Source: Tetramitus jugosus
Lineage: Eukaryota; Protista; Heterolobosea
Direction: 5' to 3'
Length of the DNA stretch: 64,000 bases
Assembly: GCA_937625935.1 (NCBI GenBank)
Contig: OW569389.1
Coordinates: forward strand, 62,001 to 126,000
The position numbers and the translations under genes are program-made. The notes beneath the pieces are model-generated. The model made no database searches. It was not told the origin of the DNA and saw nothing but the letters and a program-made list of their open reading frames with translations. Numbering within the stretch: position 1 is the first letter of the stretch; each line of letters begins with the position of its first letter. Positions 28,271 to 34,434 of this stretch are shown here, piece after piece.

Positions 28271-29140
28271 ACGCTTTTTTGTTTCTATAAATCTTGTTGT
28301 CCGTGTGCTGGATGCACATGTACAAGTCTAACCTTAATTTCGAGTTCTTGTTTTTCTCGCTAAATTGTGTACATGTTGTTCATCCATGCATTCTTTTGCA
28401 CTTGTCCCAGTGTTCCATCATTCTCTTCTTAGTTTCGGCTGGCATGTGGGAACACTCCTTGGAAGAGGACACAACTGCCGTGACAACTTCTCCCGTGCAC
28501 GATAGTTGGATGAAGGCCGCATCAGCGATTCGAGCAATGAGCAGTGATGTTGTTGAGCAAATGAAGGTGCACCTCAGAGAACTGCCCACATTTCGGCCAA
28601 TGACATCATGAAGAGGAATTCCATGCACTCACTGGTGAATATCTCTCGAAAACGATCGAATGTCCAGGTGCTGTTGATATCTTGGAACCCGAGGACAATT
28701 TTTTTCCGTTGGGTCACCATAGAATGAACACGTTATCCGTGTCTGCCTCTCTGGGTAACACTGACTTTTCATCGGTTTCTGTGAAACAGAGTGCCACAGA
28801 ATTGCTATCGTGAGATACATTATGCAGTTGAAAATGAGATGAATAGTGCCACGATGGCCTTTTCTCAGCAAAGGAATGACATGTCATTTTGCTTCCAATT
28901 ATTGAGTGCAGGAGCGGGGGTGACAAAGGAGTTGAATAGCATGTAAGGAAAACAAACTTTACTTCCAACCGATCGGTTCTGTCCGTGGAACTAGATTTAC
29001 AGAACAAGAAGAAACCTTCATCCCACATTGAAACCTTTCCTGCAAGAGTAAAACAAGAAGATAAATGAGCAGCAAGAATGGCTAAATCTTCTTTTCAAAC
29101 AACAAAAGCAACCAATTTACTGATTATTTCTTCGTAACTG

Positions 29141-29226
29141 CCTCACAGTTCAGAGTCACAAAGTGGCTCGTGGGATTACGCTCTATTCCGAGTTGTGATC
29201 CCATTTTCTTTCCCAAACAACAGAAG
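29141..29226 (+). ncRNA. Unknown two-hairpin structured motif, copy 1
   Basis: agtcac-aaa-gtggct; gtgggattacg-ctc-tattcc-gag-t-tgtgatcccat; tail aaacaacagaa. Covaries with copies 2 and 3. Confidence 0.6.
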
Positions 29227-29302
29227 TTAGCAATCATTTGAAACATCCTGGATTCCTAGCAAGTGGCGTTTATTACATATTTACAAGTGAAAGGTTCTCA
29301 AC

Positions 29303-29521
29303 TCAATGAGAAGTAGTTCTCTTCTCCAGCGTGTTCTTTGAGCTAGTTCTTCCCTTCTTCTTGCTCATCACACCAGATAGAGCTGCTCTTGACAATGCAG
29401 TTTCATTGTAATTGATATTTCTTCGCGTTCTTGTTCCCTTTGCGATGATATTCTTTGGCGAGAGTGTGCTTGGTTCCTTGAGGGAGCACTTCTTGATAAT
29501 GTTTCTTCTTGAGCTGGCCAT
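29303..29521 (-). CDS. Small basic protein (72 aa) with CHZ-like motif
   Basis: ATG 29521 after an A/C-rich leader; NIIAKGTRTRRNINY resembles the Chz1 NII.GRRTRG..IDY motif. Confidence 0.6.
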   Translation of the reverse strand: MASSRRNIIKKCSLKEPSTLSPKNIIAKGTRTRRNINYNETALSRAALSGVMSKKKGRTSSKNTLEKRTTSH

Positions 29522-29828
29522 TGTGTTATTGTATTTTGTGAGATTGAGTTGGTTCTTGTTGTTACTTCTGGAGGTTGTTTTTTCTTGTGGCAAACAGACA
29601 AAATTGCTCAACATAAATATCGCATTTTTCATTTCCAGATAATTTTTTCATTTCCATTCTTTTGTAGATCAAGGAACTTTCACAGAGGAACTTTTTTTGC
29701 ACGATCCTCGAAACCACATCGATCTGGTGGTCTTTGACGGGCTTCTTTCGCGTTTTAATCTGCAAGCGATGGAGGTACCAATAGGGTTTGAGCACCAATC
29801 CAACTCAGATAACACACCAGTTTGAAGA

Positions 29829-29916
29829 CCTCATAGTGCACGGTGGCAAAGCCACTGGTGGATCAGAGCTCTATTCCGAGTTTCTGATCCATTTCCTCTT
29901 TCCAATAAAACAGAAG
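29829..29916 (+). ncRNA. Unknown two-hairpin structured motif, copy 2
   Basis: ggtggc-aaa-gccact; gtggatcagag-ctc-tattcc-gag-t-ttctgatccat; tail aaaacagaa. Confidence 0.6.
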
Positions 29917-30238
29917 TAATTCAAGACATACTGTGTCATTCTTGCAATGTCGAACACTCCAAAGTTCTATGTTTTTTGATTCAAATCAAGAATCATACCT
30001 TGAGGTTTCTGTACAGGTCAAGGTTTAGGGACTGGGTATTCTTGTCTCTTCCATTATGTTGGACTGTTGAAGGAGTTGATTCATTTATGGACGAAAACTC
30101 CGAAAAGGAATCGGACAAGAACTATCAATACAATGATTCAAAATCAAAGGAGTTTGTTTGTTGTATAAAATGTGACAATCAAGTGCCCGGGAATGCATCA
30201 CAATCAAAACACAACAAGAACACAACAAATAATTGAGA

Positions 30239-30817
30239 ATGAAAACCAACTTCCTTGTATTAATTGCAATTGTAATTGCTTTCTTTGGATACACGACTGG
30301 CTCTGTCCAAACTCTGTACTGTGGAAAGTACCAATGTCCAGCAAGTAACTTGTGCTGCAGATACAATGTGATTGGAAGTCGACAACAGTGTTACAACCCT
30401 TCCACCCATTCGTGCTATTCTGACAAGTACAAGCCAAAACAGAACTGTCTCTGTGCAAAGTATGATAAATGTTGCAATGGCGTGTGTTACGACACTGCCA
30501 AATTCTTTTGTGACTTGAAAACAGGTACCATCAAGAAACGACTCTATTCGACAAAGGTTTCTCGAAAAACTACATACTCCAACCCAAATCAGTGCGGAAC
30601 CTTCCAATGTGCCACTTCTGATTCATGCTGCCACAACAACATTATTGGTGCGTATAGGGATGTCTGCTATTCTACCGCCACTCACGGTTGCAACGCTGAT
30701 CTATACAATCCATCGTACAATTGTCTCTGTGGAATCCGTGATGCTTGTTGCAACGGCGTTTGCTTCGACAAGTATCTCTACAAGTGCAGTTATGGAAAAG
30801 TGGTTCAATTGAAGTAA
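30239..30817 (+). CDS. Secreted cysteine-rich protein with two ~70-aa repeats
   Basis: Signal peptide, then CG.YQC....CC..N.IG....CY...TH.C..D.Y.P..NCLC...D.CCNGVC.D...C twice. Confidence 0.85.
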   Translation: MKTNFLVLIAIVIAFFGYTTGSVQTLYCGKYQCPASNLCCRYNVIGSRQQCYNPSTHSCYSDKYKPKQNCLCAKYDKCCNGVCYDTAKFFCDLKTGTIKKRLYSTKVSRKTTYSNPNQCGTFQCATSDSCCHNNIIGAYRDVCYSTATHGCNADLYNPSYNCLCGIRDACCNGVCFDKYLYKCSYGKVVQLK

Positions 30818-30963
30818 CTTCTCTTGTAAATCAAAATTTTATAAGCTTTCGTATCGGCTGGCAAATTCATAAAACTCAATGATTATCCAAAGTACAGAGC
30901 GGGTGTGAGTTTTAAATCCTCTTGGTCAGTGCGGAAAGCAGAACCCAGCCAGCAATAGTTAAA

Positions 30964-31083
30964 AGCCTACATTACTGAGGGTTCTCGAGTAGTCTCCTAT
31001 CTCAATACTAACTCAGCCAGATGGTGCTTAACTTCTCTATTCGAAATGGGAAGAGGTGGTTCCACCATTGTATGAACGTAGAC
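30964..31083 (-). rRNA. 5S rRNA gene
   Basis: Reverse complement GTCTACGTTCATAC...GTAGGCTTTT; identical to 32198-32317. Confidence 0.96.
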
Positions 31084-31118
31084 ACAAGATTCAATTTGTA
31101 ATAGTTTCTGGTGCCGAA

Positions 31119-31359
31119 GGCGGACGAAGTGGATCGGGATGAAGAAGTCAGTAGCCGCAAAGAAAGCCACGACCCTCAAGTGTTCACGTCCACCTAAGAG
31201 AAACAGAAGCAATGACCATCTACGAGCCTCATTGGGAAATAAGGTACATATAACCAGGGCCAACGCTCCGCGAGCGTTGGCTAATGTAAACGAAAGACAA
31301 TAACAAGGGCAACTGCCATGGTTGTATTAAAAAAAAGAAAAAAAAGGCAAACGAAGTGG
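31119..31359 (+). mobile_element. Short LINE 3'-end insertion with TSD, 50 bp upstream of 5S
   Basis: TSD ggcggacgaagtgg (31119-31132) and ggcaaacgaagtgg (31346-31359). Codes IGMKKSVAAKKA (cf. NGVKKVMAEKKA). 3' UTR hairpins, ggttgtatt and A8GA8 tail. Confidence 0.85.
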
Positions 31360-31958
31360 TGGGAATCTCCGCGTTTTTCGTGGTTGCAAGATGGGATGTA
31401 GACACTCCACTAGTACTATCTTCCCGTTTTTAAGAGGATGGATGAAATACTAGGTGCAATGATTGGGAATGGGATGACACAGGAGGAAGAGTGGTTGTAT
31501 CAGTTCGATGATCACACTCTCGAAGGACTGCAAACAGAGTTACCGAAGAGAAAGAGAAATTGCTTCTCTGTGTTGTATGGAAAAACAAATTCTGTTTTGA
31601 GTGGATGATCCAATTCAGGTGTCGAAACAGGGGTGGCCAAGTCTTCACAAACTCAAAGGTGACGAAGTCCCGTTCTTGACCCTAAAGAGGAGGATCTGAG
31701 AGACATTCAAGCGGTGAACAAGTGACCATTGGGTTGCAATGATTTGAAGATGGAGAGTTCTAAGTGCAACAAACTACGCGATCATATCTCTGTGAGGAAC
31801 TTCCCTTTGAGAAGGACTCACTGAGACTTGACAAGATTGAGCACAGAGCCTCTGGAAGTTTCCTCAGGAGTAATCAAGTGCTCAACCAAGAATTTGATTT
31901 TTCTGTCAAAGTTCGTGCATTGTTGTGGGTCAACTGTGATTAAAATGCATTTTCTTGG

Positions 31959-32045
31959 TTCTGTTGTTTGTGGTAAATGAAATGGGACAGCAACTCGGAA
32001 TAGAGCGCGATCCCACAAGCCACTTTGTGACTTTGGACAGTGAAG
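31959..32045 (-). ncRNA. Unknown two-hairpin structured motif, copy 3
   Basis: Reverse complement agtcac-aaa-gtggct; gtgggatcgcg-ctc-tattcc-gag-t-tgctgtcccat; tail aaacaacagaa. Confidence 0.6.
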
Positions 32046-32197
32046 GCTTTCAAATGTGCTTGGAACTGCTCGGATATAAAATCTAGTTCTCCTCGGGTGA
32101 AGATAAAGAGGAAAACCGTGCAACTTCTGGCTCAAGAAAGTATGGTTTTCCTGGTTCTTCAAGTTTGAGCCAACTATTTTCGGGCTCAGTTGGCAAA

Positions 32198-32317
32198 AGC
32201 CTACATTACTGAGGGTTCTCGAGTAGTCTCCTATCTCAATACTAACTCAGCCAGATGGTGCTTAACTTCTCTATTCGAAATGGGAAGAGGTGGTTCCACC
32301 ATTGTATGAACGTAGAC
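32198..32317 (-). rRNA. 5S rRNA gene
   Basis: Same sequence as 30964-31083, with a TTTT terminator. Confidence 0.96.
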
Positions 32318-32351: not shown

Positions 32352-34434
32352 GCCTGTAGGTATGGAATGTTGTCAGATTGGTGAGTGGAATGGTGGAGAA
32401 CAATTTTGCTGGTGTTCTGACGAGAGCTGTCTCAAGAAGGTTCCCTATCGGAAAGGGAACAAGGCAAGGTGACTCTTTATCACCTACCACATACATTCTA
32501 GTGCACCAAACGGTGTTGATGTATGTTGACAGGAAGGTACTAGGTTACCGAGCTATGTCTCAAGGATTGTGGAACGCGGCCTACATCGACGATTGCAATT
32601 TGTTCGCCGAATCCAGGGCAGATATTGAGCGTGCTGCACAGGCGATGTCGGAGGTTCTATCGTCACTACGGATGTCGATGCACCCTGACAAGCTTGAACT
32701 GTATGTGCGACAAATGGAGAAGGACACAGGGTATGACATAGAGGTGGATGGAACAGTTGTTCCCGCGAGAGACAGTTCTCGAGTCTTTCGAGCACTGGGT
32801 CTTTTCACCAACCTAAAGGGGAATACAAAACAACAAATTGAGCAGGCATGGAACAAGTCCCAAAGAGTGGTGACTATGTTGAAAATGATGAAGCTTACTC
32901 CCAGACAGGTGGCAAGAGTAGTGAACACATGTATTCACCCTATTTTCAAGTATGCATCTGAGTTCACTGATTGGACTGATGGATGGATACTCAAGGTGAA
33001 CAGACTGGGTAGGATGCTGGTCAAGCACGGATCGGTAGCAATGAAACGCTTCCCCTCCGAACTGCTCCCGGTCAGCAGTGATCATGGATCGATCGGTCTG
33101 AACGATATAGAAGAAACTATCACGACGCAAACCGCCTGGTTTGTCAGTACCATGGTGTCTGGTAAGAGAGATACCGAAGCGAAACAGCTGTTGCTTGACA
33201 CGCTTGAGGAGATCAAGCAAAAACAAACATTCCAATCAGAGAATGTATTTCAGTCAAGCAACAGGCTGGAACACGCTAAGCACTCTTACCTGAAGTGGTG
33301 TGCGCTAAGAATGCACAGATATAATATCAAACTAGGGAAGGAACGGGTCTACAACAACTGTGATGACTGCAATATCGCACGATATGTGCCATCAGTTATC
33401 CTCAAAAGGCTCTACCTTGGTGGTATTACAAACAGGGACCAATTGGTCCTGGACAACAAGCTCAAAAGTCTGAAGGACATCAGAATTGAATTCCCGGGGT
33501 GCAAGATCGGGACAAGATCTCATGAGATGCTGAAAATCATGGTGTCACAAATGAACGGTTGTGAGTGTCAATCACAAAGGGAGGATCCCTCCAGCAGTAA
33601 CGCAGAATCCCTCATGATGGGGGACTCCCGTATCGAGAGCAGAGAGCAGCTACAGTCAATGATGGATCAACAAAGGACCGAAAGAATCTCGGGAATGGGG
33701 CTCTACTGGCTGCAAGCTGATGCAATACGAAGCGGAGCTGACTTCAGCTTTCTGAAGTACCCACACAAGATCAATAGGCAAGTGGAGTGGTTCTATGCTC
33801 AAGTGCGTAGCGGTACTCTTCACACAAAAGAGACAAAGCGCTGTCTATATGGCAAGGATGAAGTGATGGAAAGATGTGAGCGATGTCTCAAAGAGCCAGA
33901 GACGATACAACACTGTCTCATACGTTGTCCAAGGGCCATCGTGCGCCGAAGAAGACTGGCATTGTCAGTAGGTAAAGACCTTGACAAGCTGGGTATTCAT
34001 CATAAGCAGCAAATCAATATATGGTTTGATAATGTTGTGTGGAAGGATGGTAAAATCTCTGTGAGAGAAAATCGTAAGACAAGCAAGGAGTTCCTATCTG
34101 GTATGATGGGGGTTGAAAATTCAGCAGTGGAACAAGTAACAAAAGGTTTGAGGATGAACGGTGTGAAGAAGGTCATGGCGGAAAAGAAAGCGAAATCATT
34201 CGTGAACAGGGTGAAGAGGAGGTGCGTCGACACCCTTCATCGCCTATTCATCTCCCACAAGGAAGACACATAACAATGACGCTCTACGAGCGTCATTGTG
34301 AGAAATGAAAAGTAACGGAGGAGATAACGCTCTTCGAGCGTTATCCAGTGTAAATAGTCAGAAAATAAAATCGGAGCAACCGAAATGGTTGTATTAAAAA
34401 AAAAAAAAAAAAAAAAAAGCCTGTAGGTATGGAA
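32352..34434 (+). mobile_element. 5'-truncated non-LTR retrotransposon (L1/Tx1/TRE-like), recent, 51 bp upstream of 5S
   Basis: Perfect 16-bp TSD gcctgtaggtatggaa (32352-32367 and 34419-34434), A23 tail (34396-34418) and an uninterrupted ORF2 remnant. Confidence 0.95.
32369..34273 (+). CDS. LINE ORF2 remnant: C-terminal half of reverse transcriptase + CCHC zinc knuckle (no native start)
   Basis: GTRQGDSLSP, AYIDD, FRALG, and CERC...ETIQHCLIRC. Frame is open from the 5' junction. Confidence 0.9.
   Translation, partial: VVRLVSGMVENNFAGVLTRAVSRRFPIGKGTRQGDSLSPTTYILVHQTVLMYVDRKVLGYRAMSQGLWNAAYIDDCNLFAESRADIERAAQAMSEVLSSLRMSMHPDKLELYVRQMEKDTGYDIEVDGTVVPARDSSRVFRALGLFTNLKGNTKQQIEQAWNKSQRVVTMLKMMKLTPRQVARVVNTCIHPIFKYASEFTDWTDGWILKVNRLGRMLVKHGSVAMKRFPSELLPVSSDHGSIGLNDIEETITTQTAWFVSTMVSGKRDTEAKQLLLDTLEEIKQKQTFQSENVFQSSNRLEHAKHSYLKWCALRMHRYNIKLGKERVYNNCDDCNIARYVPSVILKRLYLGGITNRDQLVLDNKLKSLKDIRIEFPGCKIGTRSHEMLKIMVSQMNGCECQSQREDPSSSNAESLMMGDSRIESREQLQSMMDQQRTERISGMGLYWLQADAIRSGADFSFLKYPHKINRQVEWFYAQVRSGTLHTKETKRCLYGKDEVMERCERCLKEPETIQHCLIRCPRAIVRRRRLALSVGKDLDKLGIHHKQQINIWFDNVVWKDGKISVRENRKTSKEFLSGMMGVENSAVEQVTKGLRMNGVKKVMAEKKAKSFVNRVKRRCVDTLHRLFISHKEDT

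Follow-up and report, generated by a model that had tools for sequence, protein, structure and literature searches.

What are the three structured repeats found between positions 29141 and 32045 of a 64,000-nt stretch of the Tetramitus jugosus genome (Heterolobosea; assembly GCA_937625935.1, contig OW569389.1, positions 62,001 to 126,000 of the forward strand)? This whole 64-kb stretch is here called the window. The original prediction described a motif of about 87 nt and proposed that it is a functional RNA under structural selection. Our analysis of the window and of the 26.35-Mb genome agrees with that proposal, which is supported by covariation, by an snRNA-type promoter and 3' box, and by islands of coverage in RNA libraries. 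The motif as described is, however, the 3' two-thirds, that is, the constant part, of a larger small-RNA gene, and transcription most likely begins some 35-55 nt before it, which had been missed. The genes use the same external signals as the spliceosomal small nuclear RNA (snRNA) genes of this genome, namely a box resembling a proximal sequence element (PSE), a TATA-like box and an A-N-AGAA 3' box.

The three copies are located at 29141-29226 (plus strand), 29829-29916 (plus strand) and 31959-32045 (minus strand), exactly where they had been placed, and a search of the window for the 12-mer core CTCTATTCCGAG gave these three occurrences and no others, all free of mismatches. Folding of the proposed strand as RNA gives two adjacent hairpins in all three copies, with z-scores relative to shuffled sequences of -4.1, -4.3, and -3.1, while the complementary strands in the same folding display z-scores of +0.1, -2.65, and -0.6. 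Since the good fold is confined to the proposed strand, the argument that the G-U pairs define the strand holds, and the orientation is accepted. Hairpin 1 was described as a 6-bp stem followed by a 1-nt linker, but it contains seven base pairs, the seventh of which also covaries (G-C, A-U, C-G, and G-U). The single mismatch reported for the third copy is a C.U mismatch in hairpin 2. Neither at the gathering thresholds nor at E<=10 does the motif have any match in Rfam 15, in line with the earlier remark that it belongs to no recognised RNA class; the only matches are 5S rRNA and tRNA, those nearby being the two 5S genes, and a tRNA scan found nothing at the motif itself. No support was found for the motif being a single-stranded DNA signal or a self-cleaving ribozyme.

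The family is much larger than three copies. When the genome was searched for a 14-mer core allowing at most one mismatch, 48 occurrences were found, compared to six for a reversed control, and after retrieval of all loci 43 of the 48 proved to be true copies. A covariance model (R1), built on the 78-nt constant part (hereafter the handle) of the family alignment (A3), gave 47 matches in the genome. These comprise the 43 copies, one further intact copy and three degenerate fragments, so that there are approximately 44 intact copies. Of the window genes, the second and the third score 87.5 and 95.2 bits, respectively.

It had been noted that the stems differ between the copies while pairing is kept, and this also holds for the larger set. 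Covariation was computed on 38 distinct sequences, using as controls alignments where the 3' partners were slid 1-3 columns, as well as 500 shuffles. Standard pairs are formed in 97.6% of the cells, against 37-40% in the slid controls, eight of the 21 pairs change on both sides, and the covariation score was reached by none of the 500 shuffles. In hairpin 1 all cells are paired (100%) and three pairs show changes on both sides; the corresponding figures for hairpin 2 are 96.4% and five pairs. Class B (the classes are described below) differs from the others by an exchange of most of hairpin 1, from GAGUCAC/GUGGCUC to CGGUGGC/GCCACUG, and of six pairs in hairpin 2. Variation within classes A and C is seen in the closing pair of hairpin 1, which may be G-C, G-U, or A-U, while in hairpin 2 one pair is either A-U or G-C. 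The additional copy found by the covariance model (L091) displays a further compensatory change, from C-G to U-A in the apical stem of hairpin 2. The copies are paralogues and the independent covariation events therefore few; the signal is still consistent and strand-specific.

The genes are modular. According to the sequence preceding the motif they can be grouped into class A (13 copies), class B (eight copies), class C (19 copies in four subtypes), and a number of singletons, and the window contains one gene of each of the three classes. Roughly seven to nine class-specific types of 5' segment, of about 20-45 nt, are joined to the same handle. The handle consists of a linker (CCUCAYNGUNCA), a 7-bp hairpin with the loop AAA, a 14-bp hairpin with the loop UAUUCC, and AUUU. 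The GU of the linker is invariant in all intact copies of the alignment, the UAUUCC loop is the same in all copies, and in the tail CCAUUU is invariant while the remainder varies. The 5' segments vary by insertions and deletions within a class, and no common fold is shared between the classes. Identical handle variants are found with differing 5' segments: class-C3/C1 copies (L015+2919, L020, and L021+793) bear the class-A stem, as expected of gene conversion between modular genes. The features of the three window genes, called A, B, and C after their classes, are as follows.

29020-29031, plus strand: PSE-like upstream promoter box of gene A, ATCCCACATTGA; the same box is found upstream of U6, U2, U1, and U4
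29060-29066, plus strand: TATA-like box of gene A, GATAAAT, 39 nt after the PSE-like box
29099-29140, plus strand: class-specific 5' segment of gene A; start at about 29097-29101 predicted from the U2 spacing
29141-29152, plus strand: conserved single-stranded linker of gene A, CCUCACAGUUCA, from the family alignment
29153-29169, plus strand: hairpin 1 of gene A, 7 bp, loop AAA, from folding and covariation
29170-29204, plus strand: hairpin 2 of gene A, 11 bp, a bulged U and 3 bp, loop UAUUCC, from folding and covariation
29205-29212, plus strand: U-rich tail of gene A, AUUUUCUU; the mature 3' end is probably within it
29215-29226, plus strand: 3' box of gene A, AAACAACAGAAG
29711-29724, plus strand: PSE-like box of gene B, AAACCACATCGATC, from the family alignment
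29753-29759, plus strand: TATA-like box of gene B, TTTTAAT, 41 nt after the PSE-like box
29792-29897, plus strand: predicted RNA of gene B, with 5' segment 29792-29828, linker 29829-29840, hairpin 1 29841-29857, hairpin 2 29858-29892, and tail
29904-29916, plus strand: 3' box of gene B, AATAAAACAGAAG, from a scan of the family for 3' boxes
31959-32148, minus strand: gene C as a whole, with PSE-like box 32148-32135, TATA-like box 32107-32100, and predicted start at about 32068
32045-31959, minus strand: handle and 3' box of gene C, with linker 32045-32034, hairpin 1 32033-32017, and hairpin 2 32016-31982, followed by the 3' box 31970-31959

The 5' segment of gene A is conserved in the 13 class-A copies. 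Two observations concern 5' segments elsewhere in the genome. The singleton L023 (G000:C34:42405-42482, minus strand) has a longer 5' segment containing a near-perfect hairpin, GACCGCCUCA UG UGAGGCGGUC, and 5' segments can therefore be structured. About 140 nt past a class-A gene there is an orphan fragment of a class-B 5' segment (G000:C29:444481-444524, plus strand; 91% over 42 nt), which has no detectable handle and is probably the decayed B gene of an A-B pair.

In order to compare the flanking signals with those of known genes, the spliceosomal snRNA genes of the genome were located, giving four U2, two U6, two U1, and one U4 gene. The upstream box of the family is a CCCACA/ACCACA element, represented by ATCCCACATTGA in class A, AAACCACATYGATC in class B, and AACCCATACTT in class C; AAACCACATCGATC and AAACCATACTT are further forms of it. 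In 38 of the 43 copies a PSE-like box stands 112-134 nt upstream of hairpin 1. The TATA-like boxes (GATAAAT, TTTTAAT, and GGATTTAAG) follow 38-41 nt after the PSE-like box. The arrangement upstream of the snRNA genes is the same: U6 has GAACCACATTGAA and GATAAAG, U2 has GACCCACACC and GATAAAT, U1 has GACCCACACAG and CATAAAT, and U4 has TACCACAATTG and GATAAAT, and the distance between the two boxes is 39-41 nt for U1 and U2 and 37 nt for U6.

The downstream signal is also shared. An A-N-AGAA(G/C) box is found 10-21 nt past the 3' ends of U1, U2, and U4, and the box located 9 nt behind the U4 gene is AAACAACAGAAG, the same 12-mer that ends the motif as it was described. All 43 copies have A[ACT]AGAA 12-19 nt after hairpin 2, as opposed to 5% of random 35-nt windows. 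The pyrimidine tract and AACAGAA, which had been counted as parts of the motif, are therefore a variable 3' trailer and a box for 3'-end formation that stands at a fixed distance outside the fold. A search of the genome with a pattern of all three signals gave ten places, against three for a control, and six of these are class-A genes. The same grammar of PSE, TATA, and 3' box is displayed by two other loci, L102 (G000:C14:523621-523833, plus strand) and L103 (G000:C4:210811-211028, plus strand), which have the Sm-like sites AAUUUGGG and AUUUGUGG but are unmatched in Rfam. Both may be further genes of the snRNA type, possibly encoding U5 or RNAs of the minor spliceosome.

The 3' box also bears on the idea that the repeats are mobile or structured spliceosomal introns, similar to introners, bounded by GT near the 5' end and by a pyrimidine tract and YAG at the 3' end. 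A GT and a (C/T)AG are indeed conserved at a spacing of 74-80 nt, and the AG is preceded by a pyrimidine-rich tract. However, the YAG belongs to the box that is found also behind U1, U2, and U4. All 43 copies lie outside coding sequence, and removal of the segment from GT to AG does not join a long open reading frame (ORF) in any of them. Four sequencing runs contained no GT-AG joint over the motif, and unspliced RNA-library contigs are present. With no ORF restored, no joint, and the YAG being part of the 3' box, this explanation was rejected as extremely unlikely.

The flanks had originally been regarded as unrelated between the copies. The upstream parts nevertheless contain the class-specific conserved segments and the common promoter boxes, and similarity reaches approximately 90-200 nt in the 5' direction, while on the 3' side it stops sharply right after (A/T)A(C/T)AGAA. 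Such a sharp boundary at ACAGAA in a multi-copy sequence might be taken as the end of a transposon or of a short interspersed nuclear element (SINE), for instance a Helitron-type 3' hairpin, a miniature inverted-repeat transposable element (MITE), or a retroposon mobilised by the reverse-transcriptase element present at the locus. The A-B pairs and their adjoining genes also recur as larger duplicated blocks. Upstream, however, the similarity is not uniform; it is restricted to short boxes at fixed spacing, separated by spacers that have diverged, which indicates selection and not recent copying. Alignment of the 43 copies with their flanks disclosed no A tail, terminal inverted repeat, target-site duplication, or CTRR end. 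An external promoter would not travel by retroposition, and the stems keep their pairing through compensatory changes on one strand only. An origin as a transposon end or SINE is accordingly very improbable, and was rejected on account of the external promoter and the lack of a terminal repeat, A tail, or target duplication.

Given the snRNA-type signals, a very divergent version of a known snRNA also has to be considered, above all U5. No U5 gene was located elsewhere in the genome, either by the Rfam model (48 of 1349 candidates scored) or by a pattern combining the loop and an Sm site, though it may simply have been missed, and a long stem-loop immediately followed by a U-rich site is a U5-like feature. 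The invariant loop is UAUUCC, however, and not a loop 1 of the CCUUUUAC type, and about 44 copies with differing 5' segments contrast with one to four copies each of U1, U2, U4, and U6. Nor is there a weak Rfam snRNA match at E<=10. Due to the wrong loop, the copy number, and the missing Rfam match to U5 this identity was rejected, and it has little to be said for it.

The genes are present in RNA libraries, as seen from assembled contigs, which carry no information on ends, strand, or cap. Two of the runs, X1 and X2, are soil metatranscriptomes. In X1, X2, and X15 depth is present at 29089-29241 (gene A, including its 5' segment), 29349-29564, 29774-29924 (gene B), and over a neighbouring ORF encoding a cysteine-rich protein, and it is zero at 28950-29081, 29280-29345, 29676-29741, and 29940-30005. 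A 107-nt contig of X15 (record 18) with a depth of 423 spans 29789-29894 without mismatches, has zero depth on either side, and fits the predicted B RNA.

These contigs are also relevant for the possibility that the family encodes spliced-leader (SL) RNAs. A leader exon, consisting of the 5' segment as far as the invariant GU, would then be trans-spliced to mRNAs, and there would be at least three classes of SL. Several properties of the genes point in this direction: the snRNA-type promoter, the high copy number, linkage to 5S genes as in several lineages with trans-splicing (PMC1657053), and an invariant GU donor directly after a 5' segment of 30-50 nt. The donor pairs poorly with U1, as those of SL RNAs do. 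According to the criterion used by SLIDR, an Sm site should be found 20-60 nt after the donor and be bookended by stem-loops (PMC7986045). The U-rich site is situated 55 nt past the GU, and it resembles the Schistosoma Sm site AGUUUUCUUUGG (PMC7986045). Stems are, however, found on one side only, as no hairpin follows the U tract, and the Sm motif is incomplete. Positions +3 to +6 (N-C-A-N) are incompatible with pairing to U6, the 5' segments differ by insertions and deletions within a class, and the end of the leader followed by a base other than G does not occur in the genome. The RNA-library contigs are moreover unbranched across the putative donor, in the X15 contig for gene B and in X1 and X2 (at 29147/29148) for gene A. 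At the contig level, no accumulation of loose ends was seen at the donor in four runs, nor is depth greater over the 5' segment than over the handle. For the 5' ends of the actin and EF-Tu-like mRNAs only short contigs colinear with the genome were found; these are probably DNA and uninformative with respect to trans-splicing. No SL trans-splicing in Heterolobosea was found in the literature searched. Taken together, a role as SL RNA seems improbable, and it is less likely than a modular ribonucleoprotein (RNP).

That the family consists of about 44 independent genes with snRNA-type external signals, which give rise to the RNA of a modular RNP, is in our opinion the probable explanation when taken as a whole. 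Transcription, probably by RNA polymerase II, would begin about 39 nt after the TATA-like box, judging from the spacing in U2. This places the starts at about 29099 for gene A, 29792 for gene B, and 32068 (minus strand) for gene C. The transcript would end a few nucleotides past hairpin 2, giving RNAs of about 95-115 nt in general, with predicted lengths of about 110 nt for A, 105 nt for B, and 92 nt for C. Each RNA would consist of a class-specific and mostly unstructured 5' segment (about 20-45 nt) and the constant handle. The handle might serve as a platform bound by a dedicated protein or by an Sm/LSm-like core, and the exchangeable 5' segment might confer specificity on the RNP, either by pairing with nucleic acids or by acting as a decoy of a binding site. 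The notion of guides or decoys is derived solely from the anatomy, as the searches described below gave neither a target nor a source for the 5' segments. A system of this kind, new among eukaryotes, with one dedicated protein core on the invariant two-hairpin handle and a few exchangeable 5' segments that, as guides or decoys, direct it to a handful of nucleic-acid or protein targets, is a tentative suggestion that we regard as rather doubtful in its full form.

Several observations weigh against this explanation. A BLAST search of the whole genome with the A and B 5' segments returned family copies only, in addition to the truncated B fragment mentioned above (C29:444481). When the 5' segments, the linker, and the loop were compared with pre-rRNA (from ribosomal DNA on contig C53, reached via the 5.8S gene), 5S rRNA, U1, U2, U4, and U6, neither complementary nor identical runs exceeded those of shuffled sequences. 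Neither a target nor a source of the 5' segments was thus seen in the genome, pre-rRNA, 5S rRNA, or snRNAs. Sm binding is uncertain, as the local Sm sites (AAUUUCUGG, AAUUUGUUG, and CAUUUUUGG) have a G-rich end that is missing from the U-rich tail, and the tail has no hairpin 3' of it; only CCAUUU(U/C) is constant in the family. The T run after hairpin 2 is compatible with RNA polymerase III as well. The ends of the RNAs are predicted, the breaks between contigs fall where the paralogues diverge, and some RNA-library contigs, which stem from relatives, extend past the unit into the flanks. Run X15 belongs to the same study as genome-like runs, and its kind is not on record. As for homologues in other species, none was found: the core pattern matched metagenome contigs in three cases, namely two that are near-identical and break off at the repeat, and a bacterial one that is a chance match. 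A 21-mer of the leader had no match in metagenome contigs of the Joint Genome Institute (JGI), a weak blank because one of the positions covered by this 21-mer differs in the soil relatives. A search of the literature found no paper describing the family.

The suggested clustering next to 5S genes is not restricted to the window. A 5S gene is found within 1.5 kb of about 20 of the 35 distinct family loci. Dispersed 5S genes number at least 47 in the genome, and even if 150 copies are assumed, a 3-kb window would contain one in less than 2% of the cases. In the window there are two 5S genes in the cluster.

32198-32317, minus strand: 5S rRNA gene (Rfam RF00001, 100.4 bits), ending 50 nt upstream of the gene C promoter and on the same strand
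30964-31083, minus strand: second 5S rRNA gene of the cluster (Rfam RF00001, 100.4 bits)

The handle loop CUCUAUUC is antisense to nucleotides 42-49 of 5S rRNA, and the tail UCCCAUUUC equals the adjacent nucleotides 33-41 (5S gene 30964-31083). The local alignment of these two 8-9-mers with 5S rRNA is not significant; the similarity is thus a curiosity, though worth recording given the physical linkage.

Three protein-coding ORFs are found among the RNA genes in the window.

29306-29521, minus strand: small basic ORF (about 72 amino acids, starting MASS) between genes A and B
30242-30817, plus strand: gene encoding a cysteine-rich secreted protein with a signal peptide and two CC..C..C repeats
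32378-34270, plus strand: reverse-transcriptase ORF (RVT_1), 60 nt upstream of the first of the two 5S genes listed above (32198-32317)

For the small basic ORF there is coverage in RNA libraries, but Pfam gave no significant match. It is open with in-frame insertions and deletions in several paralogous A-B blocks and broken in others. The cysteine-rich protein belongs to no Pfam family. Its paralogues are found directly after B genes at other loci, some of them truncated at the 3' box of the B gene, and a 537-nt contig in the soil metatranscriptome X1 spans the ORF.

Compared with known systems, the family shares the PSE-like box, the TATA-like box, their spacing, and the 3' box with the U1, U2, and U4 genes of this genome, the box behind U4 being identical, and it resembles these Sm-class snRNAs in its size of about 100 nt and in having a U-rich site after a stem-loop. 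It differs from them in having no match in sequence or structure, 10-40 times more copies, exchangeable 5' segments, and no G end on the U tract. The SL RNAs of nematodes, Euglenozoa, Hydra, and flatworms are similar in that many snRNA-type genes, often linked to 5S genes, encode a 5' segment followed by GU and, 20-60 nt further on, a U-rich site. The present family, on the other hand, displays no joints between leader and mRNA in contigs, which pass the GU without branching, lacks a hairpin 3' of the U tract, and has 5' segments that vary within classes.

The closest analogue, in gene organisation only, is the Class I RNAs of dictyostelids. These are lineage-specific and abundant RNAs with 18-39 genes per genome, and their function is largely unknown (PMC7919456). 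They are driven by an upstream element, DUSE, which is common to snRNA genes, and combine a conserved short motif with a variable part; the RNAs are 42-65 nt long and have a stem that joins their 5' end to their 3' end, as well as an 11-nt motif (PMC7919456). The RNAs described here measure about 100 nt and combine a free 5' segment with a pair of adjacent hairpins in the 3' part, they have no sequence similarity to the Class I RNAs, and they are from another eukaryotic supergroup.

In the HSURs of Herpesvirus saimiri and in U7 snRNA it is a single-stranded 5' region that pairs with other RNAs, and the protein core is bound by the 3' part. The proposed RNP would resemble these as a small snRNA-type particle with its specificity in the 5' part and a core-binding 3' part. 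The order of the elements differs, as the Sm site of U7 precedes the terminal hairpin, and there is no sequence relation.

The family outnumbers all the located U1, U2, U4, and U6 genes together, which amount to nine. Its promoter, its fold, and its two invariant loops are clearly under selection, and the family is found in RNA libraries and unmatched in Rfam and the literature searched. If the modular reading is true, it would be an RNP system without counterpart among described snRNAs or snoRNAs, and the family is a clear candidate for an RNP that is lineage-specific and has 5' parts that can be exchanged. If the SL reading is true, the amoeboid sister group of Euglenozoa would have its first case of SL trans-splicing, and the family offers a concrete and cheap test for such trans-splicing outside Euglenozoa in this part of the eukaryotic tree. 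The analysis has also provided the grammar of snRNA-type promoters and 3' boxes of a poorly studied amoeba, and this is usable for finding more of its small RNAs.

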